NCBI GenBank assembly: GCA_047495785.1
Contig: JBLDXI010000011.1
Location: 496,001-560,000 of the forward strand
Direction: 5' to 3'
DNA from: Lepidodermella squamata
Lineage: Eukaryota > Animalia > Gastrotricha
Length of the DNA: 64,000 bases
Shown here piece after piece: positions 1,620 to 55,430 of this stretch. Both the position numbers and the translations under genes were made by a program. Positions within the stretch are counted from its first letter, which is position 1. Every line of letters begins with the position of its first letter. Below the pieces are notes generated by a model. That model saw only the letters and a program-made list of their open reading frames with translations, was not told the origin of the DNA and did not search any database.

Positions 1620-1800
1620 AAATGAGAAACAGAGTCACATCTCCTAGCCAGAAAAATGCAAGAAATCACGAGAAAACTAATCAAGCATGTCACTTGTCAA
1701 AGGGATGTAAGAAGTCAGGAGAAATTTGGTCCAACCGGGTGAAATTTCGAAATTTGTTCAACCAGTTAGCATCGGGGTTTTCCGGGTTTTCTCCGGCAAA
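1620..1800. repeat. Dispersed repeat, homologous to about 8270-8424 plus 9275-9330; represents the empty site of the hAT MITE
   Basis: gtcacatctc...ggagaaatttggtccaaccgggtgaaat...catcggggttttcc aligns with the sequence flanking the MITE at 8425-9274. Confidence 0.7.
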
Positions 1801-3224: not shown

Positions 3225-3250
3225 GATATATATATTATATATATATATAT
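3225..3250. repeat. Imperfect (TA)n microsatellite
   Basis: atatatatattatatatatatatat. Confidence 0.7.
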
Positions 3251-28300: not shown

Positions 28301-31300
28301 GAGCTTTTTAAGCAAGATTATGAAGACCTAATCAGAACTGGAAAATTCAGTTATTTTAGGCCTCTTTCATCTCATAGAAATTTTGAAATTAGGGAAAAAA
28401 CGAATAATCTAAAAAATCTATAAACGATAAAATCCGAAAATTGATCAAATCACGTACGGACTTCGAATGGTTTGAAAATCAGGTTATTTCGATGGGATTT
28501 TAACTGAGCGTGTTCCACGAATAATTTTTAACTCTTACCGATGAGATCAGGGTTAAAATTTTCAGTTAGAATATTAGATTAATAATTTTCCTCGTTCTAT
28601 GCAAAATATTGATTGTTATTTGCTCTAATAAAAATTAGGAAATATACTTTAATTGGCATCTAAATCAATTTTTTCTGCATCTAATATCTTTTTTCCACGT
28701 CTAAATCTTTTTTTCGCATCTACGCCTTTTTTCTACAGCTAATTCTACTTTTTCTCACATCTAATTGAAAAATAGCTGGAATGACTTCAAAAAAATTGAA
28801 AAATGATTCAGCGCGTTTTTCTCGATAGGAAAACATATGTTTCGTTGCCAGATCAGGCGCGCGGAAAAATGCACGTGGGAAAATGTTAATAGAAGAATGC
28901 ACGTGCGAAAGGCGTAGTAAATAAATTGTGCAATAGTCATGTTTAGCGCATGAAGAAACATGTCAAGGAATGGTGGGCCGGAAAACAGCACCCCAAGCTT
29001 TATCGCCGGATAAAGAAGGACATCGATGATCTACAACTGTCGCGCTGTAGAAAAGAGTTCATCATCGTGTCGAAGCTCCTCTACACTGGGAATCATTATA
29101 TGGCTTTGGAAAAGCCTTAAATTGATGTTTTTCTTTCATTTTTCCGTTTTTCTTTTCTTTTCTTTTCGCTAAATAAAGCGATTTACCTATGTTCTGGCAA
29201 CAAAACATATGTTTTCTTACCGAGAAAAACGCGCTGAATCATTTTTCAATTTTTTTGAAGTCATTCCAGCTATTTTTAAATTAGATGTGAGAAAAAGTAG
29301 AATTAGCTGTAGAAAAAAGGCGTAGATGCGAAAAAAAGATTTAGATGTGGAAAAAAGATATTAGATGCAGAAAAAAATGAATTAGATGAATATTAAAGTA
29401 TGGTCCAAAATTAGGCTGGTCGGAAAATAAGCGGCGCAAATAAACTCACGGTTGGCGAGACACTTTCGGGTACAACGTAGGCGCCCGTGTACGGCTCGTA
29501 GGCCTTCGCCCCAACCGCCTGCACGGCGATCGGCTCGTTCGGGTTCAGGGCGATGGGCGGGGCGAAACTGGGCATCGCGCGGCCTCGACCGCCTCCGCCA
29601 CCCATCGGACGACCGCCACCGGCACCTGGGCCACCGCGCATCGGGCGCCGGTTGGCCATTCCTCCTCGCATCGGAGCAGCCCTGAAACGAAATTAAAAAT
29701 CAGCTAAAAATATTAAATATTTCCCACTGGGAATAACTGGGTGAAAGGCTATAATTGTCAAATGAAAATCACCGCAAAAAAATTGATTAAATGGAATTTA
29801 TTAAAATTCAATAATTTTATCCTGATTTTTTTAGGATGGTCGAAAAAGCTACCAATGGGTTCTAATAAAAAATCAATTAAAAAAATAAAAAAAAATTATC
29901 AAAAATAATTCCCTTAATAATGAGCGAGATTTTGCGGTTTCGGCTGCAACTATCCAAAAAAAGAATTCAAACAATATTCTAACTAAAAAGAGACTTAAAG
30001 GTAAATTCTGAGGGGAAATCATGCCTTCGAAATAATTTTTTCTGCATCAGATATTTTCTCAATAATTTTACCATAGTATAAAATAATTCCCACCTCCCTC
30101 CTCCAACGTCACCTCGGACCCCTTAAAGCCCGGTCGATACGAATTCCGATCATTTTTTATTTTTTGTGCCTTGCTAGCGTCTTTTAAGGTCGGCCATCGA
30201 AAAAATTGAAAATTCGACTCGGGTGAGCGTTAGCTCAAATTTAAAGTTTAGTTTTTCAAAAAATCTCTAAATAAATTTCTGCGCATGCCAATGAGGTATA
30301 TTACCATAACTTATTTTTTATAAAATCAGGGTGAAAAGTAAAAAATTCCGCAAAGTATCCCAGCCATTTGAAATCGGCATATCCTTGTGTCCTACAAAAT
30401 TTACGTATATTTTTTCTGAATTTTCCAGAGCCGAAAAACATGGTTTTGTCCGAAATAAAAACTTAAGGTACTTATAATACGAATTTAATTCTCTATTAAA
30501 TTGTAGAACAATGCCAGAATATGTTCTCTGAATTAGTACCATTTTTAAATACTCGCTTAAAATGCGACATACAGCATCGTTTATCTCGAAAGAATAAGCG
30601 GTAGTCCTAGTGTAGGGCATCGGCTCCATGATGACCGAAGATAGGGATATTAATATTTGATGTTATTTAATAACAATGAAGTTGATGAAGCACACAACTA
30701 GAATATCAATGCCGCTTGACAAAGAAAACAACTAATTAATAATAGAAAATGAACTTGCCACGTGCTTCTTCCATTATAAGTTTAATTCGTTCATAACATA
30801 ATAATATATAAATTACCCCTTTAACGAAACATACGCGGAGACTTGAATTAAAAATGAATGTTCAAAAACTGCATAAAAAAATTAAAAAAATCAGAAGTTT
30901 TCATTCAAGAGTTATCAGGTCAGCATTCATCATGCTATCCATCAACCATCAGAATAAATAATTCAACCAACTTTTTCATTTTTTTTAAATAATTTTTAAA
31001 ATTGGAGGGTGACGTTTTGCATTAATACTTAAGGTATGAACACTTCCAAAACCTCAAATCTCAACGACATTAATATTCAGATAAATATTCAGATAAATAT
31101 TTCAGGGCTTACTTGGCTTGAAAACCACCACCGCGACCTCCTCGAGCCGGCATCGACTGCTGCATGGCCTTGCCCTTCGGCTGATCTTTCACTGCCGACA
31201 ACGGTGCCAAGGGCGCGACATCGCCGGATGGTTGCAAAACGTGGGCGCATGTGTTCAAGAAGTCGAATATGATCAGCATCTGCTCGCGAACTGCGTGAAT

Positions 31301-31903
31301 GTCAAGTCCAGCAGGGAATTTCAGCGCTGGCATAACCGGAACTGGTGGCAGAGGCATGGGCGGAGGCAAGCTTGAGACTGCGGTCTGATTCTCAGCCGAT
31401 TTCCCACCTCTGCTAACAACCGAGGCAGCTTTGCCACGACCGCGACCCACCGGAGAGCCCCGAACTGAGCCTGCCTTGCTGGGTGAGCTCACTGGAGTAT
31501 CAGCCTGCTTCTTACCGCCTTTCTTCGTCGCGTTTTCCATTGAAGGAGACCATTCAACGTCACTGCCTACCAAATCAGGATTCTCGTGACCATCTTCCTC
31601 CTCATCATCACTCTCTTCGTCTTCATCCTCATCACTGTTATCGTCTTCAGCTCCACTGTCATCGTCATCCTCCTCCTCTTCATCTTTGTAGTCTTCAAAC
31701 TCCTCCTTCGCAACGATAGGACGCTTCAAGCCAGCGGGAGGAGTGACCGTTTTACTCTCAGCTTTCACGACTTTAGGCTCCGCCTTCACGGGCTCGGCTT
31801 TCACAGCAACTTTCTTCACGTTACTCTCAACATCAACATCTGAATCGTCAGCAATTTCGATCTTTGCGAACTTTCCACCGCGACCTCTTCCGCGTCCAGA
31901 CAT
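10360..31903 (-). CDS. RGG/acidic N-terminus plus tandem-BRCT protein, 53BP1/Crb2-like (exons 31113-31903, 29450-29681, 24649-25032, 22490-22737, 10460-10499, 10360-10407; about 580 aa)
   Basis: All six exons join in frame with canonical GT-AG sites (phases 2,0,0,2,0; 1743 nt). BRCT1 CIAPAWVLEC...YVLPAG and BRCT2 IFGGRKVVVV...TADWLAQSLLVG resemble the 53BP1 C-terminus. Linking exons 1-2 to exon 3 is inferred from phase compatibility only. Confidence 0.75.
10830..11392. mobile_element. Tc1/mariner-like MITE with about 140-bp TIRs
   Basis: About 10836-10975 is the near-perfect reverse complement of about 11248-11386; TA flanks both ends. Confidence 0.75.
11816..12817 (-). CDS. Secreted Cys/Thr/Ser-rich protein, copy 2 (4 exons: 12485-12817, 12307-12429, 12001-12252, 11816-11944; 278 aa), nested in intron 4 of the BRCT gene
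   Basis: Signal peptide; three phase-0 GT-AG introns; open frame; paralogous to 4776-5725. Confidence 0.85.
14885..15094. mobile_element. 210-bp palindromic MITE-like element
   Basis: cagagtaagcactcaagctaaa ... tttagcttgagtgcttactctg, with further internal pairing; no clear TSD. Confidence 0.65.
15783..16114. mobile_element. MITE-like element with 19-bp imperfect TIRs
   Basis: acgggcgccgtccttcaca ... tgtgaacgacggcgcccgt. Confidence 0.5.
16953..17621. mobile_element. Nested inverted-repeat elements: inner 18-bp perfect IR (16968-16985 / 17453-17470) inside an outer element with TGCGCAAGTGG-type repeats
   Basis: aactattgaggcgtcatt / aatgacgcctcaatagtt; ccccacttgcgcaac / gttgcgcaagtgggg plus tandem gcaagtg units at 17560-17612. 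Confidence 0.55.
18473..19373. mobile_element. Non-autonomous hAT-type element nested in the Mutator-like element, 901 bp
   Basis: Termini CAGGGTAT / ATACCCTG; perfect 8-bp TSD cacatttc; subterminal AAACCGG repeats at both ends. Confidence 0.9.
19426..21940 (+). pseudogene. Spliced (about 10 exons) transposase-derived gene: NOF-FB/MULE-like N-terminal half, three AT-hooks and an OTU domain; probably disabled
   Basis: YIQ..VHPFAIYLWT..SIDASGSVV..KRMLYYA resembles the first catalytic-Asp region of NOF-FB/MULE transposases. RGRP occurs three times; OTU motifs DGNCLFRA and NHYGSL are present. There is an apparent frameshift near 20410-20450 and no visible second D/E block. Confidence 0.7.
23812..24174. 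mobile_element. MITE with about 41-bp imperfect TIRs and GGGG...CCCC ends
   Basis: ggggtcctccacaaagcagcaggcttcaaa / ttttgaagcctgctgcttcgtgggggacccc; flanks aagtggt/aagtgat may be a 7-bp TSD. Confidence 0.65.
25049..25100. repeat. (TTCAAA)n tandem repeat next to the exon 3 acceptor
   Basis: aattcaaattcaaattcaaattcaaaattcaaaattcaaaa. Confidence 0.7.
28647..29398. mobile_element. Foldback-type MITE with about 205-bp TIRs built from about 20-bp CATCTAA...T-tract subrepeats
   Basis: 28644-28852 is the near-perfect reverse complement of 29193-29401; TA flanks both ends. Confidence 0.8.
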
Positions 31904-32644
31904 TTTTGCTAAATACAATAACCTTGCAAACTGAAGCCTAGTTCGAAAGAAATTGGCGATCAATATTAACGGATGGCAAGCAGAACAAAAAGATGGCGAC
32001 TGCGATAAATGAAGTTACCTGAACGAAGCAAGATGTGAAACTGCAGAACTCCCTAATGAACGCGCGATGAAGTGCGCGAAGTGCGACAAAATGTGCATGA
32101 AAATAGCGCCAAAACTAATCAAATTCAAAAACGTACTCATCAATAAAATGTTAGTGAAAATGTAAATAAAACAACAATTTAAAATATTTAAAGTTCTAAA
32201 ATATTCAAAATTGACTGCTGCCTTGCTGCATGAAAAATCAGCCGTCACCTATATCGATCTGCGTTTTTTGTGTGTGGAATGACTGCAGAGGCTGCGGGCT
32301 GCGTCCTAGTCACAAGTGCAATAAGTGTGGCCACTTTGCCCAAAACATGTTTCGATGTGAGTAACCTTTTATAATGGGCAGTTTTAGGTCTGAGATCTCT
32401 GCTATGCAGATCGAGCTGAACACAATCGACCGATGGATGAAGGCAAATCGACTAGCCAAGTTATGTCGATCGCCGACAATTCTAGTGCCGAACCCATCGA
32501 AGAGTCACTAAACGGGCGAACACTAAGTCGCACTGGTGAACCAAGTTAAATAGGTTTCCCGTTCGATTCCCGTTCGTGCTGGTCACCAAACCTCGATTTC
32601 ATGGAGGATCAGCCAGTTTTACCAGTTTTATCGTTATCTATCTT

Positions 32645-33215
32645 AGAAGCAAATGCGAAAAGTATAATGCCCATCTAATGGTATGCGATTCATCAACGAA
32701 CAACTGTCTGTCCAAATGTGTACCCGCACCCTGCTCTAGCGATCCAACATGCACACCATCCGCCAATCTATGCGACGCGGTTTTGTATCATGAAATCAGC
32801 TACAAATTGCCCGGCAGGACAAACTGGCGCGAGCCATGTGAGCCAAGCCTCCTTAATCATTCTTCTCATTTTTGAATTTTGATGTATCAGCCCTCTTTCA
32901 ATTCGTGCCAAATAACAGCAAGGAAAGGAGATTCAGTCTTAAAAAGTAATGATCAATTTTGCACAGTTAACACTGTTGCTTGCGACTCCGTACTAACCAT
33001 TGGGAAAACTGCGAGGATTAGCTGAATTTATTTCACTTCAAACACTGATGCTCTCTCAGGTATCTCCCCGGTTGAACCGGTGCTCGTCAGGCTCCAAGTT
33101 TCCAAGAGTGTTGTATGCTTCTATCGCAGAGAACTGTCACATTTGAAAAAATGGGCACCGGTTCTTATGACGTTTCTGGTTCTGACTTCAGCCGAGCCGC
33201 TTGAACTTACATTGG
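32645..33215 (+). pseudogene. Degenerate third member of the secreted Cys-rich family (exon 1, 2 and 4 homologues)
   Basis: VCDSSTNNCLSK...CIMKSATNCPAGQ, PSFNSCQITARKGDSVLKSNDQFCTVNTVACDSVL and FQECCMLLSQ align with copies 1 and 2; there is a frameshift and damaged donors. Confidence 0.7.
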
Positions 33216-33495
33216 GTTCGCAAATCTTGTCGTTTTATTTCAATAACTTGGTGTGATCTTTTTGCACAAATTATGAATCATCGCCATGCAAAAATGCAGC
33301 GATGATTCATAATTATTAGCTGTTGTTCGCACTAAGAAGATAACTAAGAAGATAACGTTGAGCTAACATGGTTTCTCCCTTTGATGGACGGTGATGTTTC
33401 ATCGCCTGTCTTCGCCCTCTTCAAAACCGGTCAAAGTCCTGAAGAGAACAAATAAAGCTATTATTACAAAACACAAATAAAAAATCGAAGCGGGA

Positions 33496-33951
33496 TGTCT
33501 GTACTTGCGCAAACGATTCTGCACAAAAGCATTTGCACAAAATATTTTGCACAAACTCCATTTTTCAAGCGGAATCAAGCTTAATAAGAAAATTGAATAT
33601 ACCAAATTGAAGACAAAGCCCATTGGCATCAAAGACTGATTTCGGGCCTTGCTTTCTGAGATACTTTAGTGCGTCCGATTCGAGTTTAAATTACAAGGGG
33701 TGGCGAGTTTCACGTTCGGATCTAGGGCAATGATGAATTGATAAAATGAAGCTGAAGTCGATCAATCAATGCTGCCATGTCCATTTTTTCTGCTTTTATC
33801 ACTCAAGACTGCCCTGCTGTTGCATTAGACAGATTTTCTAAGCAATGAATGTTGATATCCGATATGAAAATGGAGTTTGTGCAAAATATTTTGTGCAACT
33901 GCATTTGTGCAAATGCTTTTGTGCAAAATTGTTAGTGCAAGTATACAGGCA
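33496..33951. mobile_element. Foldback-like element with TGCACAA subrepeat arms
   Basis: Left arm gcacaaaagcatttgcacaaaatattttgcacaaactccattt is inverted relative to 33867-33950. Confidence 0.7.
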
Positions 33952-35054
33952 AATCATCGAAGCTTGGTGATTTGCAAGAATGTTCATTGTTACGTCTGTC
34001 AAGTTCAAGCCTGTGAGTTTGTACTCGTCGGCGATCGGGTCGCAGCAGGGCGAAGCGAAGTGGTTAAGTAACTGGTCATCGAGAGTAATGGACAGTGCCA
34101 TCTTCCAGTTTCATGTGCCTACTCGAGGTCTGCTCGAGCCGCCGCAGGGACCCATGAGACGCGATACATAACAGAAATGTAGATTTTTTGAATTGAATAA
34201 AACAATTAAGTATAAATCTATATTGTGAAGACTTCATGGTGTAACCTCGCGGAAGTCTGTTTTTGAAAGATATCACTCCAATGCAATTTAAATAGCCTGG
34301 CCCCGGGGTTGCCTGGTCTATAATCATCGAAAGGTGAAAACATCATTGATAATAGAATTGAAAACAATTTACTTGAACCTGAAACTCCTGTCTGATTCGA
34401 TCTGTGCTATGGTTGACGACATAAGGCCGTCCTAGGCTGCACGGTACAGGTCCCTGCGATTTCCAATGAAGCTGCAGGTTTAAACTGCAAGCAGTCTAAA
34501 CGGTCCATACATCTCACCAAGTACTAATGCATGCTTCTATAGGCATAGCAGTTGAAATTGTCTCCGATTGCAGGATAGAGAGAGTGAATTTTAGTTAAAC
34601 GTTATAGGACGCACTTCACTGGATGATTAGTTTTCCCAATGCTTAATTTCAATAGGACAGCTCGAAACTTTTCTATGATTCATGATTTAGGGATGATTCA
34701 TTTTACATTTTTAAGCGGCGAATAGCATATTGAATAGAAGCGCCGCATTCATATGCGAAGCGTAGGTTGAATAATGATACTTCCAAGTTACAAAACCAAG
34801 TTGCAGAAATTATTCTTACTATCTTGACCCAATTTATACTGATATAATATGCCTGATGTAATCTGGAATGCGTGGAACATTTCCTGAACTGATTACTTTG
34901 CGTTAAAATGTGTAATGCCAGAGGCTATTAATAATTTATTGCAACTTGGAATACGCGATGTAACATGGAAATCGCACGCCTTCGCGATCCGCAGCCAACA
35001 TGAGAAGCATACAATGAATCCAGCTATTTAAGATGAATAAAGACATTGGCAACT

Positions 35055-35062
35055 ATATAAGT
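35055..35062 (+). promoter_or_regulatory. Candidate TATA box of the transporter gene
   Basis: TATATAAG about 80 nt upstream of the ATG at 35139. Confidence 0.4.
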
Positions 35063-35138
35063 ATAAGCCATCGCTGCAGCGCACGCATCCGCATTTCTTC
35101 ATAAGTCTTATAAAGTTATATTCCAACTGCGACTAGCA

Positions 35139-36703
35139 ATGACTACTGGAAGAGCTCCCATAAGTAGCAATGCAAGGCGAGCACAGCAATATCTCGGAAT
35201 ATTCGTGGCCTGTTACATGAGTATTGTCGTTGACGGTCACTTTTATGCTTTCGGCTTGCTGAAGCTAGAAATGGAAAAAGAGTACCCCGACACTCCAACC
35301 GAATCAATCTCGCTAATCGGCGGTCTCTATGCAACGTGTTACCTACTTTTTGGTAAGTTTGACGATTTTCTATTGATTCTATTGATATTTTCAAGCATTA
35401 ATTTCCAGCTCCGATTGGCATGGCTATACTCGCTGCTTTCGGCTTGAAAACCGTCTCAATTCTAGGAACCTCACTTCATGTCCTCGGCTTTTTTCTTGCC
35501 TTTCTGGGGCAATGGATCAAATGGGGATTCGTCCTCGACGTCATTTTTGTCGGCATCCTACCAGGTCTTTTTTTCTCAAAAAAGCCTAGGTTTTCCTTAA
35601 TTTCTCGATCCAGGAATTGGCGGTGCTCTAATGTTTGGTCCTTCGATTGTTGGTGCGCCGGATCAATACGGGAAAGATGCTGGTATTCACAAAGCTATCA
35701 CCACTTCAATCGCAACGGCCGGGTCGCCCGCCGGGGCTCTGTTGTACGGCTTTCTGTTCAAATACTTCCTGATGGCAACGCCATTCGGTTGGCGAGGGGT
35801 TATGCTCTTCTACGCAATCATGGCTGCTGTGATCATCCCGTTGAGTTTCACGTTCTACAAACTGCCTGAGGACCCTCTACCAGCCGGGCAACGCCCTCCG
35901 ACCGCATTGGAACGGTTCAAAGACAAAGTAGCTGGGCAGTTCACAAAGAAAATTTGGAGTTGCAGCAACAAAGCGTTCTTCGCTTTCCTCATCTCAACGT
36001 CATTCGCCGTCCTGGGATACCCAGTCGCTACGCTTCTTGTCAACACGATGGCGAAAGACCCTAAAATGGGCATCAGCGACACCACGGAGAGGAACCTCAT
36101 TTTCTACTGGGGCATATCAAACGTCATCGGCCGCTTGTCCCTTGGCTCGCTACCGAAATGGGCTAACCACAGCAAGGTTTTCTTCTCCTCTTATTCTATC
36201 TACGTATTGTCGCAAATTCTTTCTGCTGCTGATGTTTCGTTGTTCCCACTCTACATGTCAAGCGGGGATGTTGCCTTCATTCTATTTATCGTTTCCTACG
36301 GCTTCATTTCTGCGCCCATCATGGCAATTCGAAGCACATATTTAGGCGATCTTTTCTACCCGAGCGATGGCAAAACGACCGAGCAAGAAGCTAACGAAAT
36401 CAAGAATGCCTCATTTGGCTGGCAATTGGTCAGTGACGGCATATTTGCGTGGATCGGATTCTACGTGTCAAGTAAATATTTTTCAATTTTCAATTGCATC
36501 ATATTCAAGACATTTTCTTAGCTATGTTGAACAACATATCACCGTTGTACAGTTGCTTGTTCGCAGGGGGGACTTTGTTGGCTGGTGCCATCACCCTAGC
36601 CCTTACGTTCAGCCCCTACTTCAAAGGTCTCAGCAGCAGACTAGAGCATGCGAAGGCCGCTCCTGCTGAGAAAATTCCTCTAGCCGAAGTCGCTTCCGAA
36701 TAA
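35139..36703 (+). CDS. MFS transporter, monocarboxylate/aromatic amino acid (SLC16-like); 4 exons with about 50-nt introns
   Basis: About 12 hydrophobic helices; YAFGLL..E, AGSPAG, FGWRG and GRL motifs typical of SLC16; introns near 35353-35408, 35564-35613 and 36472-36521. Confidence 0.8.
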
Positions 36704-36846
36704 TCTAATTCAAATCTTGCTTGCCCTGTGATTCGTCCCAGTATTAATTTTTTCTCGAATTTTGAGTTAAATTGAAAATTTAACTAATTTTTCTTTTCAT
36801 TTTTTCCCTTAGACTTTAATTAAAAATTGCGAAGTTTATTCGAAGA

Positions 36847-38673
36847 ATGGCACAACAATTGTCGCTAGGCGAAGCTAAAATCGCGCAAATTCGAACTCGT
36901 TGGAACGCCGGCTCTTTCTGCGATCAAAGAGGCACTTCACTGCCTGATAGGCAAAAGGTTGTTCTGCCCATATCAGGCCAGCGCAACAAACTGATAACAA
37001 GCGCCCTGCCCTATGTCAACAACGTGCCGCATCTTGGCAACATCATCGGCTGCGTGCTGAGTGCTGATATTTACGCACGGTTTTGCCGCCTACGTCGCTA
37101 CAATACGCTGTTCATATGCGGAAGCGACGAGTACGGCACGGCCACGGAGACGAAAGCGATCGAAGAGGGCACAACGCCGCGGCTGCTTTGTGACAAGTAC
37201 CACGAGATTCACCGCACTGTCTACGATTGGTTTCAAATCAGCTTTGATCACTTCGGCCGAACTTCGACTCCACAGCAAACCGAGATTACCCAGGATATTT
37301 TCTGGCGACTCCACAATGCTGGCTTGATAACAAGCTCGTCGGTCGAGCAGTTGTTTTGCGACCACTGTGACCGCTTCTTGGCGGATCGCTTCGTCGAGGG
37401 TACGTGCCCAAAGTGTCGCTATTCGAATGCGAGGGGCGACCAGTGCGACAAGTGCGGTTCGCTAATCAACGCTGTTGAACTTGAGAAGCCGGTCTGTAAA
37501 ATCTGCGGGGATGAGCCGAAAATCGCTAGTTCCGAGCATCTTTTCCTTGATCTAGCCTCACTCGAACCTAAGGTGCGTGACTTCGCTGAGCGGTCAATGT
37601 CAAACGGCGATTGGACTGACAACGCTAGGGCTGTAACTCGGGCATGGCTGAAAGATGGCATAAAGCCACGCTGCATCACTCGTGACTTGAAGTGGGGGAC
37701 CCCGTGCCCGTTGCAAGGCTTCGAAAGTAAGGTTTTCTACGTATGGTTCGACGCTCCGATCGGGTACATTTCGATTACGGCTCAATACACCAGCGAATGG
37801 AAGCAGTGGTGGAAGAACCCAGCCGGGGTTCAACTCTACAATTTCATGGCAAAGGACAACATTCCGTTTCATAGTATCATCTTCCCGGCCAGTTTGATTG
37901 GCGCTGAGGACAATTACACGCTTGTTAACCATCTGGTCGCGACTGAGTACCTGAATTACGAAGGCGGCAAGTTTTCGAAAAGTCGTGGCCTCGGCGTGTT
38001 CGGTAGCGATGCTCAAACCTCAGGGATCGCGAGTGACTACTGGCGATTTTACCTTGTCATGATCAGACCCGAAACGGCGGATTCAGCTTTTAAATGGGCC
38101 GATTTCGCAGCTCGAGTCAATAACGATCTCTTGGCAAATTTCGGAAACTTTGTCAACCGATCACTGAGTCTTTGCTTCAAAAACTTCTCTGGCAATTTGC
38201 CGGCAGTTGGCAATCTTACAGAAGATGACTGTATCTTTCTGAACAACGTTGAACTTGAAATGACAGCCTATCAAGCGATTCTGGACAAAGTCTTGCTCCG
38301 AGACGGTCTGCTTTCGGTTCTAGCCATCTCGAGACTTGGCAACCAGTATTTGCAAGCGAACGAGCCATGGAAGTTGTTGAAGACTGACATTGATCGGGCG
38401 GGAAGTGTCGTGGCTATCGCAGTTCATGTCGTCGCAATTTTGTCTACCTTGATTGAACCCTACATGCCAGAGACTGCCGGTAAAATACGGCAACAACTGG
38501 GCATAGCGATCGATTCGACGACTGGGCTATCTTTAGAGGCCGATTCTCCTGCTTTCGAACCGATACTACCAAAAGGGCACAAAATAAATGAACCCGTTCC
38601 GCTATTCACGCGTATCGAAGAGGAGCAGTGGAAAACTCTGGCTGAGAGGTTTGGCGGCTCTCTTCAAGAGTGA
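36847..38673 (+). CDS. MARS1: Cytoplasmic-type methionyl-tRNA synthetase, intronless, 608 aa, core only
   Basis: [18 protein letters not shown] (HIGH motif), DEYGTATE, two Zn knuckles, YVWFDA, KFSKS and the anticodon-binding domain. Confidence 0.96.
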
Positions 38674-38764
38674 AATCTACTTCAACTCCAGAAAAGATCC
38701 AGTAAAATTTGCTTTTGAATGATTGCTTTTGTTTTTTTCGGTAGACTTAATAACTTGTGTTAAA

Positions 38765-39991
38765 ATGGATCGTGTCATGAGGGAAACTGGTGGGCAAGCG
38801 TCGTTTGTATTCACCTCCGAATCTGTGGGCGAAGGCCATCCGGATAAACTGTGCGATCAGATAAGCGACGCTGTAGTCGATGCATTCCTAGCCGTGGATG
38901 CCGATGCCAAAGTTGCCTGCGAATGCGCTGTCAAGTCCGATGAGGTCTACGTCTTCGGCGAGTTTATCTCAACCGCCGCTGATCGCGTCAACATCGACAC
39001 TGTGGTGCGTGACGTGATTCGAGGCGTTGGCTACAGCGATGCTGAAACTGGCATCGACCCAGAAACGTGCCAAGTTCGCGTGAAACTCGAGGGGCAAAGC
39101 CCTGAAATCGCCTCAGCTGTTCACATTGACAAATCAGTTGAAACAACTGGCGCCGGTGATCAGGGTATGATGTTTGGCTATGCTACCGACGAAACGCCTG
39201 AATTGATGCCGCTCTCCCTTGTTTTGGCTCATAAGCTCAACAAACGAATGGCGGAACTGCGCCGAAGCGGGGAATTACCCTGGGCGATGCCTGATTCGAA
39301 AAGCCAGGTCACGGTCGAATACCGCTGGGAGGGCGGAACCGTGGTTCCAGTGGCTGTCACTGCTGTTGTAATTTCGATCCAACACAAAGCTACGGTCACG
39401 CTCGACCAGTTGCGCCGGGATTTGTTGCAGCATGTTGTCATTCCAGTCATTCCAGAGAAGCTGCTCAGCGATCGAACCGAGATGATCCTGAACCCTAGCG
39501 GTTCGTTCATCGTTGGCGGGCCGAAGGGCGATGCGGGTCTAACGGGCAGGAAGATAATAGTCGATACGTATGGGGGTTGGGGCGCTCATGGCGGCGGCGC
39601 CTTTTCGGGAAAGGATCCGACCAAAGTCGACCGATCTGGGGCCTACGCGGCGCGTTGGGCTGCGAAATCGCTCGTCGCTGCCGGGCTATGTCGCCGGTGT
39701 CTGGTTCAGGTGTCCTATGCAATTGGCCGCTGTGAGCCGGTGAGTATAACAGTTTTCGATTACGGCTCAGCGAAGGGTGACCTGACGGCTGATGATTTGC
39801 AAAGTGTTATTGCCCGCAATTTTGACCTTCGCCCCGGTTGTATCATTCGGGACCTGGATCTGAAGCGTCCCATCTACCGGCGAACGGCTTGCTACGGCCA
39901 TATTGGGCGCGATGAAGCTGAATTCACGTGGGAGCGTGTAAAAGAACTCGAGCTAACTGATGCAATCCGCAAAAAGTTGGGCAAGCAATAG
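38765..39991 (+). CDS. MAT: S-adenosylmethionine synthetase, eukaryotic type, intronless, 408 aa
   Basis: [28 protein letters not shown] and [18 protein letters not shown] signature motifs. Confidence 0.97.
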
Positions 39992-40204
39992 CAATGTTTG
40001 GCTGCTCATTCATATGTTTGAGCTCATATCTATGACTGATAAGGCGCTTGCTATGAGCAAGATAATATTCTTTGATTTTTTCGAATATAAACTGTTGATG
40101 AGATTAAGCATAATCAGTTTTCCTCCAACGCTTGGTTTAATGACCGTAAACCGTTTTTAGCATTAAGTTAAAATATAGTTGTAGTTAAAATGGGCAGTTG
40201 GTCT

Positions 40205-41393
40205 TCATTCCAGCATTTTGTGAAATAAAACACCATCGACAATACCAGAACAAGTTACGACAAAGAATCCTGCAACTGAGTCCATTATATCGGCGATGGA
40301 AAAGTAAATTGAGAACACCTCCATGACAGCGTGTTGTGATAATCGCTCCTTCGCCAAACGGAGGGTTACCAGGGTGTACAAAGTTACAACCGCTCCGATA
40401 ACAATTTTCGTTTCTATCAAAATAGCCAGATAAACAGGGTCTGGCGACTGAGGAATCCCTTCGAAAATCATGCCGAGAATGACGAAATACGCAAGTAGAA
40501 TTGTGATGTTGTAAACAGGCCGATCAGGCAGTCGCGCTGGCATTATCAGGCCTAGAATTTGAAGAAAAGCCGGAATGTAACACGGAACGATGACTTGCTG
40601 GATGATGAAACCCGGCTTGCGTTTGAATGATAACTGAATCGAGACATTATCATCTTCATGCAATAGGCTATGACGTTGGTAAGTCCATACATTGCCGACA
40701 TCGCTACCCTGCCGAAAGGCGGCAGCTATTGATACCCCTACTAAATCAACATGAGACTTTTGTTCGAGGCGAATTGCGCATTCGAAGCCATCGAATGGGA
40801 ATTTTGATATTAGCGAATTTTCAGCGCAGAAAGATTCCAACTTGAGTGCACTGCTCCATCTAGAAGAACCATTGAACATGTAGATATCAACAGCAGATTC
40901 ACCAATCGACCTAATCAATCAAAAACATTCAATTTTTCCGGAGAGAGGTGTGCTTACTCCATAACGGCCCCGGGGGATGAGACTGAATTTCTGTGATATA
41001 CTGTTGGTTTCCACACTTCGTCCAGCGATGCACTCATAGCAAATTGCTTGCGGCTCAGATATTCGCAGTTGCTGGTGATGTTTACGACCGCGAGCTTCTT
41101 GCAAAAAGCCTTCAAATCGCACGGCCATGACCACCGGGCCGTTATTTCACCGTGGACGGACATAAGCCGGTCGGTGTCGCGAATATCTACGGGCGATCTC
41201 AAGTAAATGTATAGTTTAATAGGAAGCGTTTTCCTTTCCGCCAGTTAGGATGTAATGATTTGGCAGCCACTTGTAGAACGCCAGGGGGCACGACACACGA
41301 AACAAATCGTGGATAGCCGAGAGATCATGGAATCGCTCAAGCGCGTTAGCTTGGAATACAAGAAATAGCAAATTTGTTGCCACTAAGAGCATA
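40205..41393 (-). CDS. Divergent Cys-loop ligand-gated ion channel subunit (possibly a pseudogene)
   Basis: Signal peptide, VWKPTV, C..FPFD..C loop, FKRKPGF pre-M1 and four TM segments. Intron near 40912-40954; a frame change near 41235-41272 requires either a weak 37-nt intron or a frameshift. Confidence 0.7.
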
Positions 41394-44912: not shown

Positions 44913-46136
44913 CTATTCTTCGGCTTTTCTGACTCCCTGATTATCTTTGATAATGTTAGGATACATTGCATAGTTCGCAATTCCACAGATATTGATCCCT
45001 CGCCGAACTCGAATGAAACCATTCTCGCCCCACCAAGTTCCCCAGCTATTCACAAGGGTCCAGTACGGGATTTGAACCTGCTCCTCGTTATCACCCTCAA
45101 CAGTTTCGATTCCATAACCAACCAGCAGTAAGGCATGATTCAAATTCATATTGTTGCAATTATCAGCATCGGAGAAAATCCCCGATTTATAGAAAATAAA
45201 CGAACGTTGGCTTGCATCGATCGCAACTACAACCGGTCCGGATTTTAACGCCTCCATCATTTCGTCCTCATTGCCACTCGCTAGTTGGACGTAGGTCATT
45301 ATCCGGCCGTACCGTGAATTCGGGTTATTCTGAAACCGGCAGATCATTGAAGAAAGGCCCATGTAAGGGTATTGGCCCTCGCTGTTAAGGCCTCCGCTAG
45401 AAATCACGTATTCCAACGCAGCGGCTGTTGAGCCACCCTGGCAACCTCCATTTCCGAACGACCAGGAGCAATCTAGGAGATTTTGCGGGGATAATGGGAC
45501 GAAATTCTCGCCGGTTGAAATGTGGAGGCGACTTTCGATAGCTCCAACTGTTGCGAAGGCCCAACTAGCCGAGCAATGTTGGCCCTGATCTCGGACACTG
45601 CCGATAGCTCCGTAGAACCTCCAGTCTAAGAAAGCCGTGATATTCGGTTCCAATAACGGACTCGCTTCATGCATTTTGATGTCGTACAACGCTTTGAAAC
45701 CTCGTTGAAACTAAGAAGACAAAATCAAACTATTCTCCGTGACGTTCTATCAGGCTTACCAGAACAGTTTTCGATTCTAGGCGAAAATATACGCCAGGTT
45801 TAAAGCCGAAGCGCGTTGCCATAATTTCAGACGGGTGCATGTCTCCGAATTTGTTCAACGCGAGTTTGTACAGGTTACTCAGCATGCTTCGATTGCTGTT
45901 GTGGTTGTTTATGAAGTTGAGATTCAACCGAAATTCATCGTACTTTCGCGCCTCGCTCGCTGCTATATGCATCTTTCGGTTGGCCTTTTTCCATTCCTGG
46001 TAATCTACGTCTCGCTTGAATTCCTCTGAAAAGAAATCGGAATATTGAAGAAATATTTGAGTGGGGAATCTTTACCTTCAAGAAACGCATGGGATGCAGC
46101 GAAAATCACGAAAAATAGCTGCAGCGACTTGATCAT
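44913..46136 (-). CDS. Cathepsin L-like papain-family protein with the catalytic Cys replaced by Ser
   Basis: Signal peptide; propeptide with LNKFGD; mature-domain motifs LDWR, QGQHCSASWAF, GCQGG, NHALLLVGYG and NSWG. Confidence 0.9.
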
Positions 46137-46977: not shown

Positions 46978-48123
46978 TTATGCATTTCTAACGCATCGAG
47001 CGTAATTTAGGACCGTCCTCAAGTCACTCTGCGGCCCAACATACTGCGGGTACGTCTGCCCACTGGCGACATACTTCGGATCACTCCTCTGACACCCAGC
47101 GCCGTGGACATCAACCAAAGTCCCACTCGGCGCACCGTAGCCAAGGCCAAACGCGACATAGGCTGCATACTGAGGCTTAGCACCGTCTTTATGGGTTGAG
47201 CCAGACCAGAAATACGGGAAACCGCTCGAGCCATCTGGAGCTGTTATCGAACTAACGCTGAACAACGAATCAATCGCAGCAGTTCCCGTGGTTTGAGGCC
47301 CTTTCGAGTAATCAACGATACTCTGAAGTTCCTTAGCATTAGGAAGTCGCCAATCTGAGTAGGAAGTTAGCGTAAGACCCTCGCAATACGCTAGGGCGGA
47401 CTTCCAGTCCATCCCGTAGCCGCTATCAGCCTGCTGCCACATAAGACCAGTTGCTTTATCGGTGATTGTACCGTCGGAATTCGACGAAAAGTCATTCACG
47501 CCATACGCGGTGTTGCCTCGAACGAAGCGGAAGTATTTCGAGCTTGTTGTAGGGTAGCATTTGATGCGGCCATCGATGAAATTAACGCCGAACATACATT
47601 CTTGATTGCCGAAGACCAGCCCGGTGTATTTCGTCCCGCTAATCGTTTGAGCATCAATTTCCCTCTCGCCAATGGTTGTATCCCCCAGGGGTTGGTTGAA
47701 GTACGTTTCATCGATGAATTTCTTCGTCCCAGCTTTAGCGCTTGAAACATCGCCCGTCATTTGAATGAGCGAGTACAGCTCTTTGATGGTGGGAATTCGC
47801 CAATCTGTATAGCCAGCCGTGTCTGCGCTTGAAATCGCTGTTAACGCCTCGGCTATCGTCATTTTCGTCATATTTTGCTGCCACATAAGCCCGGTTATTT
47901 GATCCGTGATCGTTCCATCGCCGTTATTGACGTAGGATGGCCAATTCCCGGTGTAAGTCGCGTCCTGGCCGTACCAAGTTGCGCTCGATGAGGTCGGGGC
48001 GTTCTTCCCAGCCAAAACTGCCGTATCGTTGTAGTAGGTCGTTACTCCAGTATCTACGATAGGATAGGTCAGACTGGCAACTAGCGGCAAAGCCGCTAAA
48101 ATCAAGTAAATCGCCTGCAACAT
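46978..48123 (-). CDS. Secreted double-DUF1566 (Lcl C-terminal) protein of bacterial type, intronless, 381 aa
   Basis: Two repeats of N.DGTITD..TGLMWQQ ... DWR(I/L)P..KEL.S(L/I); N-terminal YPIVDTG and GQDA.Y; C-terminal DVHGAG.QRSDPK...GPQ.D...NY.RCVR. Confidence 0.88.
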   Translation of the reverse strand: MLQAIYLILAALPLVASLTYPIVDTGVTTYYNDTAVLAGKNAPTSSSATWYGQDATYTGNWPSYVNNGDGTITDQITGLMWQQNMTKMTIAEALTAISSADTAGYTDWRIPTIKELYSLIQMTGDVSSAKAGTKKFIDETYFNQPLGDTTIGEREIDAQTISGTKYTGLVFGNQECMFGVNFIDGRIKCYPTTSSKYFRFVRGNTAYGVNDFSSNSDGTITDKATGLMWQQADSGYGMDWKSALAYCEGLTLTSYSDWRLPNAKELQSIVDYSKGPQTTGTAAIDSLFSVSSITAPDGSSGFPYFWSGSTHKDGAKPQYAAYVAFGLGYGAPSGTLVDVHGAGCQRSDPKYVASGQTYPQYVGPQSDLRTVLNYARCVRNA

Positions 48124-48330: not shown

Positions 48331-51300
48331 TTATTTGGATTTGCCATAATTTTGAGCTATAAACGAAGCGATTTCTTTGAAAGGTTTGCCATTCATGTGC
48401 CGCTGCTCGGCTAAAAACTGCGACAACGTAAATGGGCTTTGTTTCGATGAATCCTCAGCCTCCACTCTCGCGCCACACTTTTGAACTAGGTACTTAACCA
48501 TATCCAAATGGCCGCCTTGAACTGCTTTATGTAGAGGCGTTTCGTCCAATCTGTTTCGCAGGTCACTCGTTACGAGTTTCGGACTCTTCTTGTGGATCAG
48601 CTTCAACGAATCCAAAGCTCCAGCCCCAGCTGCGACGTGGACTATTGAATCATCTTGTTCACCACCCCTCGAATCGATTTTTGCCTTGAGGTTAAGCAGC
48701 AACTCGATAATTTGAGGGTTATTCGATTTCGCAGCCAGATGGATCGGTCTCAAGTTCTTATGACCCGGCATTTCGATGTCAATCCGCTTTTTCGCTAACA
48801 TAGTCGCTATATCAGCATAACCATTCAAACAAGCTAGATGAAAAGCTGTATTGCCTTGTGAGTCTTTTGTAGTCACCGCAGCTCCAGAAGTTAGCAACAT
48901 ATCGACAACTCCATAGATTCCAGTCAGAACAGCAAAATGAATCGGAGCTCGTTCGAAATCTTCCTTGCCGCTTTTTGAATTGAGATCAGCCTTTGCTCGG
49001 ATTAAAAGCTTCATGGCCTCGATTTGCTGAGCCTTAGTCGCGGTATGAAGTGGGGTTCTACCATTTTTACCCCGGAGATCTCGGCAGCTTTTGTTGGACT
49101 GAAGCAAGATGTGGCAAAGCTCTATTTGCCCATTACGAGCTGCGATATGAATCGGCTTATCGCCATTCTAAAGAAACGCAACGCAACAATTCAAATTCAA
49201 AATTCGACTGTAAAAAGCCGCCTATAAAGCTTTTAAGAATGAAGATAAGATGAAGGCTTACCGCATCTGGAAGATCCAGCGAAGCTCCTTTCGATAGGAG
49301 CAATTTTGCTACCTCAGACTTCCCAAGTTGAACCGAAAGGGAGAACGGCGTCGTATACAGATCATCCCCTCCTGGTGACCTTTGGTCGATCTTCGCCTTC
49401 TGTTCCAGCAGCAACTCAACCATAACCTTCTGTTGCTCAAATTTGTTAGGATCTCCAAAGGCTACGATTTGGTGCAGCGGGGTCTTCCCGGCAAAACCCG
49501 GCGCTTCGATCTTCGCACCGTTCCTGATCAAAGCCATGCAAGTTTCACTATGCCCTGCTAAAACTGCGAGATGAAGCGGCATATCTCGATTAGCATCCAG
49601 AGCGTTCACATCAGCTCGCTTCTCGCAGAGGAGGTCGATGAGTTCCGGTTTCCCGGCTCCTGCTGCCAAGTGGAGGACTGACCTCGAAGCGTCCAAGATA
49701 CCGCTTTTTGCGAAAATGAAAGCCTTCTTTTCCAGCAATGTTTTCGTAACTAAGATTTGGCCATGAACTGCGGCTGTTAGGAGCGGAGTTCGTTCCATGA
49801 ATCCTTTCGATTCGAGCGGGAAACCCTTTTCCACCAAATATTTAGCTATCTCACTTTGGCCAGACTTTGCCGCAATGTGAAGTGGACCATCCGTGCCGAT
49901 TTTAGCGATTTTTGAAGCTCCCCTTTCGACTAGCAGTTTCACAGCCTCGAATGAGCCGTGGAGAATTGCAAGGCATAGCGGAGTGGCTTCATCGTCTAAC
50001 GGTCCACTTTTCGCATCGATTTGAGCTCGATGTTCCAGAAGGACACGGGCAACCTCATGTTTGTTCTTCCAAGCAGCTTGGTGAAGAGCTGTCCTCATGT
50101 TGAAACCGGGGGTGTCGATATCAAGTTTCCACGACGAGTATTTCGTAAGCAGGAAGCGCGCGATATCAGTATGACCTAAAATTCAGGAAAATTCATAAAA
50201 GATTCGATTTTTAGTCGGTATTACCTGCAATGGCTGCTACATGGAGTGGGGTGTTCTCATTCGAGTCCCGTTCGTTGAGTGGAGCACCATTTTCAATGAG
50301 AAATTCGACCATTTTCCGCTTGCCGTAGTAGCAAGCCAAGTGTAGACAAGTGCTTTCGTGATCCTCCTCGCCACTCCTCGCCTTCAAATTCGCACCGCCT
50401 TGAACCAAAATCTGAGCAGACTCAACTTGCCCCTCAACACAGCAAACATGTAAAGGTCGCCTTCCGTTGAAGCCCCGCATTTCTAGATCAATTTTCGGCT
50501 GTTTGAGATTAACAAAGTACTTCAAAATCTCCAAATTCGGCTGCTTAGCCACTAAATGAAGGGCAGTGTAACCCTCGCCATCTGTTGCATCAACCGGGAC
50601 TTTGAGATCTTGAACCATGGCTGTAACCACACTGAGGTGCCCAGCTAAAGCAGCAGCTATCAACGGGGTATTTCCGCAATCTCCGGTTGATCGAGCATCT
50701 TTTTGAGCCCCAGCTTTGATCAGATCTCGAACTGTATGCGCATTACCGGCTACAGCAGCGGTGTGGAGAGGAGTTCGACCTGCGAAGCCAACAGCCTCAA
50801 AATCACCCCCGTTAACTTGAGACAGGGCTAACGTCGTCTCGCTATTGCCGAATTTCGCAGCGGTATGGATGGGAAGATCCCCGTTATTATTCGGGGCTAG
50901 GAGAAGATCTTTATGAGTCCGACCCAAGTACCACGCAACTTCCGTTTTCCCATGCTGCGCCGCGTAGTGAAGGGCTGTAAACCGGTTTTCGGCCTCGGAA
51001 GCTCGAGCGAAGAGATCAGCATGCCATTGGGACAGCATTTTCACGAAATCAAGGTTTCCTAACATGAAACGTCCCGACTGTATATCAAGTCGTCTGTAAA
51101 GTTGATTTCTTACCTTTTATACAGGCGAGATGAAGCGCCGTCCGTTCAGTTTTACGCGTTCGATCATCCACGTCAGCGCCTTGCCTTAACAACAGCTCCC
51201 CAGCATCAGGATGGTTGAAATTCGCAGCCGTTTGCAGTGGCGTCTGGCCCTCCTCAGTGCTAGCTCTCGTGTTCACATCAGCCCCAATAGCTATCAATGT

Positions 51301-53333
51301 AGTTATTGATTTCACCTTGCCATACTGAGCAGCTACATGAAGGAGCTTCAATCCGTTCGAAGTTGTCATTTCATTAACGTCTTCGCCATTATCTCGGAAG
51401 AATTTGTCGATCTGCCGCGAGTTATCAGTCTCAGCCGCGTGCCAAATGTCCCCTTCACTCCTAAATTCGTCATTTAACGGCGGAGTTGGCGTTCGTTTCT
51501 TGAAAACTGGGGGAGGGGTGGTGCTTTTCCGCCTTAATGAAGGAGATGGGCTCTTACTGCGAGGTTTTGTTACTGTGGAAGAGGAAGAGGAAGAACCAGA
51601 TGTGGAGTAGGATCCAGATGATGATGATGCTGAATAACTGCCGCTAGAAGACGAGGAAATCGGAGGGCTAGGGGTTCTAGGTGTTTTTTTCCTCTTCGGT
51701 TTTGGCGACGGACTTTTCGACTTTTTCCTGACTTCCTTAGGCGACTCAGGAATAGGAGTTGGGGTCTTCTTCTTTTTCTTTGGCGACTTCTTCTCAGCAG
51801 AAGCAGGCACTGCATCTACGAGTGACGGGCTTTTCGATTTGAAACTCGGGTATGATTTTCGGGTTACCGTTGATGAAGTAGCGGAAGTTGAGTAAGAAGA
51901 TCCTGATGAATAGGACGATGAATGAGTCGCGGAGCTAGAACCACTTGAGTAAGAAGACGAAGTGGACCCGGTATAGGAAGACGATCCTGTGCTAGAGCCA
52001 GCTGTTGACGGTTTGTTTTGCTCGACAGGGGTCAGAGGTTGGATTCTTTTAACCTTCGAAATCGGAGGTTCAGCCAAGACTTGAGTCATAGTAGGTCTTC
52101 GCTCAGGTAACTTCTCCAACATCCAGCTTAGCAGTCGTTCGAGGTCTGGAAAGTAGTTTTTACTCAACGGAGGAGTTGGGGCCCTAAAAATATCATAGGA
52201 TGAGAAATTCTGAAAAATTCACATTAACTTACAGCATTACAGACTGAATGTCTCGAAACTGTAGAAAAATTACGAATAGCTTATTCAATGTTGCTAATTT
52301 TAGTAACTTACAGGCTTCTTTAGGTTAGCGAGCTCAAATCCGATAATTCCTAGCGACCAAACATCCGCCTTGTCGTTGAGATTGATTGGATGTTTCCGGA
52401 AATTTTCCGGGGCTGCATAGCAAATTGCTAGACCAGTTGGTTGCGGCGAGTCTTCAGTTTCGTAGACCCATCTCCCTATCCCGATATCCGCTAATTTCAC
52501 CCCATTCGGTATTACGAAGACGTTTTCAGGCCTTAAATGGCCGTGAATGATTGGCGGACTCAGTTTGTGGAAATGCTCGAGAACTTGGGCGATCTGGCTG
52601 AGCCATTTTACGATCTAACGAGTCCAGAAAGTTAAGATGAATTGATTATGAATGTATGAGTATTTACGTGTTCTTCAGGAAAGGGCTGACGAGCCTGGAT
52701 CATCTTTTCAATCGTAACACCCAAGTGATCACCCAGTTGATGCTCCATAATAATGTGCAAGAATGCAGTTTCTGAAAACACAAAAACCTTAGTGCGAGCA
52801 AAAAGCTAGTAGACCGAAGTGGTAAATTATTGGCTAAATTCCATGAAAGGAGAAATTATCAATATTTTAACATTGTAATTCTGCTGAAACCAAAAGTGAA
52901 GCTTTCTAATTTCTAAATAATTAGGAACTAATGGTAGGCTATTCTATTGGGGCTATTCTAGGCTATAACTATGTCTAAAGAGTAGGAAAATGTAGATTTA
53001 CTCCTTTGCTCAAAAATATGAGGCCCTGATAATCCAACAATTAGTATTCAAAGAGGAAAACTGCCTGAAAAATTGCCACTTACCCACAAAAAAGTCGTAG
53101 ATAGCCAGCAAATTAGGATGCTTCATTCTGACCAGTTTCTTCAGCTCCAATTGCGCCTTGTCCAAGTGCTCCTTGCTTTGCCCGAATCGACTCAGCGGTA
53201 TAAATTTGATGACCTTGTAATTGGGCAGAGCGCCCTTGGGCACTTTCTCCTGCCGGTCGGTGACGATGAGACATGGCGGGCCTAGAGAGCCGCTGGATTC
53301 CGGCAGCGGCTGTTTAACACGGTACCTATCCAT
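48331..53333 (-). CDS. NEK-like pseudokinase with a Ser/Lys/Pro-rich linker and roughly 25 or more ankyrin repeats (about 9 exons, including a 26-nt microexon near 52233-52258)
   Basis: Kinase motifs HPNL, IIHGHLRPENVF, VKLADIG, YAAPE, DVWSLG and ERRPT; many TPLH/TALH repeats; exons join in frame. Confidence 0.85.
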
Positions 53334-53772: not shown

Positions 53773-55430
53773 TTATACTGGAAGGTAGCTGAACCACATT
53801 CGATCGTCATCAATGTCGCATTGGAAAACGCCGAGCTCGTTACTAATAAGCGCCCAGCAGGCGTCTTCGAATCTAACTTGATTATTGCTTGCGTACCATT
53901 GCTGGGTCGCTATATATTTCAAAAATCAGCTATACTTGCAAACTGAGAATAGTTTCATACTTCTCCAAGGGCGGCATTGCCGCAGAAGTAATCGATTTTG
54001 GACAATGTCTATACATAGATTGTTCCACTGGCTCCGGACTTGCCCTGAAGCCTCTGCCTCAGCCCAGCGAAAACCCTCAGGAAAGACGTTTTGCATAAAC
54101 CAGCTGAAGGATGAGCAATTCATGCGATCCCTGATCGCGATTCGGTCGGAAACATCGACATCAGTGTCCAAAGGGATGGGCTGAAGTTCGTAGTAGAGAT
54201 ACTGAAACTCATCCATCCAAGCCTTAGCCAGACGGACGTTGTTTTGAAGGAAGAAGTATTTTAACGGCGTGTAAGCATTCGAGTAAGGAAATAGCGTTGG
54301 CAGCGTCCTCTCCGGGTACAAATGGCCAAATCTACTGCAGGGGATGATTTCCAACTTCCCGCCACACATCCAAACTTTCAAGCTGATTTCCATGTTTTCA
54401 GTACCCCATATTTCGTAACCAGGGTCGTAACGGCCTAAATCGTTGAAGTAATCGCGGCGAATCGCAAAATGGCCGCCGATGAATGTTGGCGTCTCAATCG
54501 GGTCCGTCGGCGATTTCCTGCGCTGCTTCCTCCATCTCGAAAGCTGAAAGCTGAAATCATACTTCAGATTCGTTAAAAATTAGTCAAAAATACCCTCCTA
54601 CTCCCAAACATGAAAGAATAAAAGCCGAATGCGAAATAATTGTCCTGATCTTCTTTAGGTTGGTACTCCATTGTCATAGAATGAATCGTGTCCATCACAG
54701 GAATAGCCATAGTTTTAGGATTTAGCCGTATCCTCTCCAACAACGGCTCTAGCCAGTAATCCGTCACCTCAATGTGGCTGTCGAAGAAGACCAAAACCTC
54801 TCCAGTCGCATTTTCGACCCCAAAGTTATGGGCCCGGCTAAGACCGAGCCGTTCCCCCGTTCTGAGAACTCGAACTTTGGGGAATGCCTTCAAATATCGG
54901 TCCAAAGGCTCTTTTAGGTAGTCGTAAGTTGAAGCATCGTCTACTAAAACAATTTCTTTGATTAGACTTGTTGGAGATCTGTCCAGGATCGAATGAACTG
55001 TCCTTAGTAGGACAGACCAAGCTTCATTATGGAAACAAATTACGACTGAGACATCCGGTAATTTTGCCACGTCGTAAGTCAAAGGGCGACAAGCAGGATC
55101 TCGATAATCTGGCAGTGACCGGTGTAGGGACATCAAATCAGCGGCGAATTTGTTGTAGAAGTACTGGAAGAAGGCTTCGGTCATTCGTTTCATGTGTATC
55201 CGGTCGAGGCCGTTCGTGTCTATTTCAACCGCCATGCCATTTTTGCCGAATTTATCCGGTATTGAGTCGACGTAATTTTCCGGTTCGATGAATTTGTATA
55301 ATTTATGGGAATTTCGGAGCGAAAATACTGTGACATAATTAAAAGGAAATTTTAAAATTGCTACGAGCCACAGGGAAGCTATGGCTAACACGGCTATACT
55401 GCCTAGTCGTCTCAACGACAGCAAACGCAT
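53773..55430 (-). CDS. GALNT: Polypeptide N-acetylgalactosaminyltransferase (GT27) with a ricin-type lectin domain
   Basis: Type II TM; SVVICFHNEAWSVLLRTVHS, FFDSH, ENMEISLKVWMCGG and PCSRFGH motifs; C-terminal LCID/C..W repeats. Confidence 0.93.

Follow-up and report, generated by a model that had tools for sequence, protein, structure and literature searches.

Does a gastrotrich express two methionine-consuming enzymes and a putative carrier as one unit, and does their grouping mean anything for methionine use? The question is raised by a locus of Lepidodermella squamata at which a gene for an SLC16-like transporter is followed, on the same strand and at very short distances, by genes for a methionyl-tRNA synthetase (MetRS) and an S-adenosylmethionine (SAM) synthetase (MAT). 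The locus lies in a window of 64,000 nucleotides (assembly GCA_047495785.1, contig JBLDXI010000011.1, positions 496,001 to 560,000, forward strand; all coordinates below count from the first nucleotide of the window), for which an earlier note, made from the letters alone, had proposed an operon-like trio. Our analysis revealed that transporter, MetRS and MAT form a real, sharply bounded, operon-like cluster. We give somewhat better than even odds to the reading that this cluster is an operon of the spliced-leader (SL) type.

Layout and limits of the cluster

The three genes are co-oriented, as the earlier note had described, and the coordinates and spacer lengths that it gave are right. The cluster consists of the following features:

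35054..35061, + strand: TATA-like box TATATAAG, probable promoter of the cluster and sole TATAWAW on the + strand of 34300-40300
35087..35138, + strand: gene 1 5' untranslated region (UTR), its first nucleotide, 35087, being a capped-type cDNA 5' end
35139..36703, + strand: gene 1, divergent SLC16-like MFS transporter, 469 aa, 4 exons
36704..36846, + strand: spacer 1, 143 nt, 27% GC
36847..38673, + strand: gene 2, cytoplasmic-type MetRS, 608 aa, no intron
38674..38764, + strand: spacer 2, 91 nt, 29% GC
38765..39991, + strand: gene 3, MAT, 408 aa, no intron, ATG at 38765
39992..40140 (end approximate), + strand: MAT 3' UTR, last transcript segment of the cluster, from cDNA depth

The contigs of a cDNA run (X1) and of a DNA run (X2) were mapped to the region. 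X1 is regarded as cDNA because one of its contigs bears a template-switching oligo tail, TGGTATCAACGCAGAGTACATGGGG, immediately 5' of 35087. This cDNA 5' end is situated 33 nt after the TATA box at 35054, and the claim that the first gene alone possesses such a box holds for the whole interval searched. The tagged end further indicates that at least this form of the gene 1 mRNA is not trans-spliced. Just upstream of the cluster, in 34800-34990, cDNA depth is 0. At the other end, it extends through the bin 39957-40147 and drops to 0 in 40148-40338, and the open reading frame (ORF) that follows MAT, at 40205-40918, runs in the opposite direction. Shortly past the cluster lies the beginning of a high-copy repeat: at 40339-40500, the depth of the DNA contigs is about 1100, compared to 60-250 elsewhere in the region, and many contigs have loose ends there. 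DNA depth is also doubled at 34800-34990, and part of the upstream stretch may be a repeat.

Gene 1 has four coding exons (35139-35352, 35409-35564, 35614-36471 and 36522-36703, with the stop codon TAA at 36701-36703) and an open spliced translation. Its three introns (35353-35408, 35565-35613 and 36472-36521; 56, 49 and 50 nt) are of the GT..AG type, and all of them are removed in the cDNA contigs. MetRS and MAT are each encoded by one uninterrupted ORF, on which the RNA contigs are collinear and free of GT..AG joints, confirming the earlier view that both genes are intronless. This absence of introns is not above chance because exons of 250-380 codons are common in the window, and neither is the shared orientation on its own, since three consecutive genes fall on one strand with a chance of about 1 in 4. 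What stands out locally is the shortness of the two spacers: in the roughly 3 kb between an ORF at 31109-31963 and the cluster (32000-35086), we found no convincing ORF or Pfam match, only short junk-like ORFs. The spacers have a GC content of 27-29%, compared to about 50% in the coding parts of the cluster, and the rise in GC at 36-40 kb reflects coding density only. GC at third codon positions (GC3) is 0.56-0.575 in the three genes and the same in the neighbouring ones, which makes the trio look resident and not recently acquired.

Spacer signals and mode of expression

In SL operons, the promoter is found at the first gene only, whose transcript need not be trans-spliced, and the downstream genes are preceded by a poly(A) signal, a U-rich tract and a 3' splice acceptor. 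In spacer 1, an AATAAT at 36699-36704 overlaps the stop codon of gene 1 and is followed by a U-rich tract; a gene 1 contig of the cDNA run stops at 36715, 11 nt past this hexamer. Further downstream, a strong acceptor, TTTTTTCCCTTAG, ends at 36812 and is followed by a 34-nt leader with an in-frame TAA, meaning that this acceptor cannot belong to a coding exon. In spacer 2, AGTAAA at 38701-38706 and a U-rich tract precede an acceptor, TTTTTTTCGGTAG, whose last nucleotide is 38744, and a leader of 20 nt completes the spacer. The acceptors are thus located 20-34 nt before the ATG in both spacers, at distances of about 96 nt (spacer 1) and about 25 nt (spacer 2) from the putative poly(A) sites. 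Both spacers, at about 28% GC, combine a poly(A)-like hexamer and a U-rich tract with an acceptor ahead of the ATG and fit the layout of an SL operon. In operons of SL-using animals, the cistrons typically lie about 30-110 nt apart (PMC7986045).

Both leaders open with the motif TAG/ACTT(T)AAT(T)AA (36810-36823 and 38742-38754). On both strands of the 64 kb, AGACTT(T)AAT occurs twice, exactly at the two acceptors. The shared start of the leaders may be a processing or translational signal, or the trace of a common origin.

The reading as an SL-type operon starts from what is observed at the locus, namely the gene structures and their spacing, the single TATA box with its cDNA 5' end, the acceptors and the poly(A)-like signals. 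RNA polymerase II would start at 35087, about 33 nt past the TATA box, and would produce a single precursor from the three genes. Cleavage and polyadenylation near 36715 would release the transporter mRNA, the MetRS and MAT mRNAs would each be freed by 3'-end processing of the preceding gene, and a leader would be trans-spliced to these two at the acceptors that end at 36812 and 38744.

Several observations weigh against such an operon. No contig of the cDNA run covers or bridges either spacer; the uncovered ranges, estimated by arithmetic from binned depth, are about 36716-36840 and about 38674-38790, and a polycistronic precursor would hardly be captured by contigs of mature cDNA. Among the 12 of 46 loose contig ends for which results were listed, there was no leader and no end at 36813 or 38745; the cDNA contigs yielded no 5' end of the MetRS or MAT mRNA, and contigs show transcript ends unreliably. 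In addition, a TATTAAT in spacer 1 could be a compact internal promoter, and the acceptor of spacer 2 has a possible cis donor at 38702 and is thus not strictly unpaired. Because the spacers are uncovered, no contig bridges them and no leader-bearing end was listed, we rate the operon at about 0.55 and regard independent transcription as a possible, if unlikely, alternative. Of the co-transcribed unit that the earlier note had put forward, the operon-like anatomy (single TATA box, 5' end and acceptors) stands, whereas RNA contigs joining the genes across the spacers did not appear.

If the three genes were transcribed independently and were merely crowded, minimal promoters would have to reside in the AT-rich spacers or in the 3' end of the preceding gene, and the acceptors would serve short 5'-UTR introns or the trans-splicing of monocistronic outrons. 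The lack of bridging RNA in the cDNA contigs agrees with this arrangement, as does the position of the TATTAAT about 70 nt before the spacer 1 acceptor, and a possible donor, GTTAAA at 36766, would create a 47-nt 5'-UTR intron in spacer 1. However, neither spacer contains a TATAWAW, and the 91 nt of spacer 2 would need to accommodate a poly(A) site and a promoter in addition to a 3' UTR and a 5' UTR. The lengths of the spacers also contrast sharply with the 3-kb region upstream of gene 1. A quite different use of spacer 2 would be the fusion of its flanking genes. Its sole GT..AG pair delimits 43 nt (38702-38744), the removal of which leaves 48 stop-free nt and brings MetRS, one UGA, 16 codons and MAT all into one frame. 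Cis-splicing of this segment and read-through of the single UGA would join both activities in one MetRS-linker-MAT protein of about 1033 aa, with NLLQLQKRSNLITCVK as the predicted peptide stretch across the linker. In a diverged copy of the spacer, from one contig of the DNA run, the sole indel that we saw is an additional C following 38738, which falls inside the 43 nt. Nevertheless, the joint 38701>38745 is absent from the cDNA contigs, in which all three introns of gene 1 were detected, and by a rough estimate an in-frame, stop-free remainder is expected by chance in about 5-9% of cases. The poly(A)-like AGTAAA and the GTAAAA donor at 38702 overlap. Neither an Rfam nor a tRNA scan of the 64-kb window gave a match, and the window thus holds no SL RNA gene, no selenocysteine insertion sequence (SECIS) and no other Rfam element. 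The earlier note had suggested looking for domain fusions, and no MetRS-MAT fusion appeared among the best 120 MetRS relatives, which are up to 1064 aa long. We therefore consider a fused enzyme highly improbable. An alternative donor at 38670 that would bypass the UGA was read by hand and discarded, as it runs into a TAA.

The three proteins

The transporter is very divergent. Its match to Pfam MFS_1 (32 bits) is slightly under the cut-off, and a full HMMER search among 1.84 billion representatives found 18 relatives, the best of which are 35% identical and are encoded on eukaryote-like metagenome contigs. The nearest named relatives are annotated as 'monocarboxylate transporter-like'. As a single sequence, the protein found no chain in the PDB even at E 10, and a word search was also blank. 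The family profile (A1), when compared with solved structures, matched only MCT10, MCT1, MCT2 and MCT8 (E 4e-19 to 6e-17), all of which belong to SLC16. Because the matches are confined to this family, the designation SLC16-like, already used in the earlier note, is supported. The best match is MCT10, an amino-acid carrier, tied with MCT1. The only sizeable relatives of the transporter are found on eukaryote-like contigs (L087-L095, from ENA assemblies ERZ23486787, ERZ23486764, ERZ27332993 and others), which also carry ANF_receptor and RanBP-type genes and on which some of the relatives form tandem pairs.

For MetRS and MAT, the identities proposed from the letters alone were borne out, as both proteins passed Pfam and NCBIfam equivalog cut-offs. 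Neither protein had an exact counterpart on record. Gene 2 contains Pfam tRNA-synt_1g (PF09334, E 1.7e-148) and Anticodon_3 (PF19303), reaches 598 bits with NCBIfam NF001100 (cut-off 587) and is also above the cut-off of TIGR00398. Residues 6-605 match the core structure of human MARS1 (5gl7) with E 8e-245. All of the best relatives are MARS1 proteins of animals, about 900 aa long and 57-61% identical, and the alignment covers residues 234-824, approximately, of a 909-aa MARS1. The HLGN (62-65) and KFSKS (375-379) motifs and four CxxC knuckles are intact, and the protein differs at 19 of 267 near-invariant columns, mostly conservatively. Judged by its sequence, gene 2 is the catalytic and anticodon-binding core of a MetRS of the metazoan cytoplasmic MARS1 type. 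The N-terminal GST-like domain and the C-terminal WHEP domain, present in most of the animal relatives listed, are missing from it, and tblastn with queries from both ends of five MARS1 proteins found no coding sequence for GST_N or WHEP domains in the 64-kb window. The GST-like N-domain anchors MetRS in the multi-synthetase complex, and an animal cytoplasmic-type MetRS that lacks it bears on the evolution of this complex.

Gene 3 encodes all three MAT domains (PF00438, PF02772 and PF02773), scores 517 bits with TIGR01034 (metK; cut-off 309), matches the human MAT1A/MAT2A structures with E 1e-158 and has the motifs GHPDK, GAGDQG and GGGAFSGKD. Its identity to every relative is 60-64%, whereas other animal MATs are 66-86% identical to one another and, for comparison, a ciliate MAT is 63-69% identical to animal MATs. 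In the tree, MAT is found on a long branch that it shares, with strong support, with a single metagenome protein (P0123, 64% identity), apart from the other eukaryotic MATs. Because the root of the tree is unknown, this branch cannot be placed inside or outside the animals. P0123, the only close relative, derives from an intron-free, 5'-truncated contig of 1185 nt (L086; JGI 3300043825, Ga0484017_002055). The window MAT is altered at 14 of 167 near-invariant columns, with R175M, R197A, H199T, T200A and F380I among the substitutions; P0123 is altered at 9 and the other controls at 0-8. The long-branch MAT bears on SAM metabolism.

The contigs of the DNA run include a form of MetRS with a 1003-nt deletion (37397-38401, with AGGAA at the joint and a depth of 40) and a form that skips 100 nt of MAT (39510-39611). 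Both forms are explained either by degenerate extra copies or by artefacts of the assembly. Horizontal transfer or a bacterial origin was considered for MetRS and MAT and rejected, since their best structures and relatives are eukaryotic (for MetRS, animal) and their GC3 equals that of the neighbouring genes.

Methionine theme, neighbourhood and known systems

Could the grouping have been selected? The carrier would then import methionine or a keto- or hydroxy-acid precursor, and a specialised MetRS and MAT would split the pool between translation and SAM; the MetRS, free of the anchor to the multi-synthetase complex, and the MAT would be extra paralogues beside canonical genes. Several features are consistent with such a methionine module: the MAT is far more divergent than animal MATs are among themselves and is changed in the near-invariant columns described above, the MetRS is devoid of GST and WHEP domains, the best profile match of the transporter is MCT10, though tied with MCT1, and the two leaders share their starting motif. 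Moreover, the reads contain expressed copies of the cluster region that are 90-99% alike, and 33 of the 40 listed differences among the diverged copies are synonymous, so that these copies are functional and under purifying selection. The divergence of the MAT and the domain loss of the MetRS also lend indirect support to the specialised paralogous pair that the earlier note had considered. However, the other copies are probably haplotypes or homeologues and hence not independent evidence. A rough estimate also shows that, if about 1 in 1000 neighbour pairs counts as 'functionally related', some 15,000 pairs would produce several such pairs per genome by chance.

The lack of this adjacency at other loci argues against selection as well. 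The check for conserved adjacency, the absence of which the earlier note had listed among the grounds for refuting its proposal, detected no co-oriented MetRS-MAT neighbours at any of the few loci inspected. In Lingula and Corticium, genes other than MAT adjoin MARS1, and the contigs that bear transporter relatives hold no MetRS or MAT nearby. Out of 80 metagenome MetRS loci, 79 are without MAT. The sole exception (L060, APMI01092117.1) carries a MAT homologue at 8-949 on the - strand (57% identical) and a MetRS homologue at 1739-3442 on the + strand (47%), and the two are arranged head to head. The metagenome MetRS relatives are only about 50% identical, so that none of them is a close synteny partner, and the MAT contigs of the rotifers Didymodactylos and Brachionus were uninformative on adjacency. 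Taken together, we regard a selected methionine module as improbable. The more elaborate proposal of a dedicated methionine operon, in which one promoter drives the carrier, a complex-free MetRS and a specialised MAT and spliced read-through adds a bifunctional MetRS-MAT, appears very improbable. Mild co-regulation may follow from the pairing of an SLC16-like carrier with two enzymes that consume methionine; on present evidence, the trio is a chance neighbourhood copied along with its segment, no more.

The earlier note knew of no described animal MetRS-MAT operon, and in agreement with this our full-text literature search gave nothing relevant. The same search found no description of MetRS, MAT and an SLC16-like gene in combination, and the combination is apparently undescribed. 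To our knowledge, metabolic gene clusters are rare in animals. If the grouping were selected, a co-transcribed carrier-MetRS-MAT unit would give a direct handle on how methionine is divided between protein synthesis and methylation. As an ordinary SL-type operon, the cluster would contribute little more than a well-delimited example with a TATA box, a cDNA 5' end and two acceptors, and such an example would be convenient for testing operon transcription in a poorly known animal. The absent domains of the MetRS and the long branch of the MAT are small leads in their own right.

Further along the window, an intronless ORF of 381 aa at 46978-48123 (- strand) encodes two Lcl C-terminal (DUF1566-type) domains (Pfam E 7e-42). 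This family is mainly bacterial, and the ORF is a candidate for horizontal transfer. It is followed by a run of four long ankyrin-repeat ORFs at 48331-52167 (- strand), in the vicinity of which we found a papain-family protease (44913-45689), a GT2 glycosyltransferase (54573-55430) and Sushi-repeat exons (56958-58242).

Each component of the cluster can be set beside a known system. With SLC16 (MCT1, MCT2, MCT8 and MCT10), the transporter shares the family profile matches and MCT-like nearest named relatives; it differs in being very divergent, with no PDB match as a single sequence and few relatives. The MAT has the three domains and the catalytic motifs of eukaryotic MATs (MAT1A/MAT2A; TIGR01034) and deviates from them in its long branch, its changed near-invariant columns and its single close relative. 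Compared to human cytoplasmic MARS1, the window MetRS is without about 220 N-terminal residues (GST-like), without the C-terminal WHEP region of about 85 residues and without introns, whereas HLGN, KFSKS and the zinc knuckles are retained. As for the cluster as a whole, it differs from known SL operons in that its precursor and the addition of a leader are inferred from sequence anatomy. Its likeness to the SL-resolved operons of nematodes, tunicates (Oikopleura, Ciona), flatworms and chaetognaths lies in the arrangement of same-strand genes at distances of roughly 100 nt or less.

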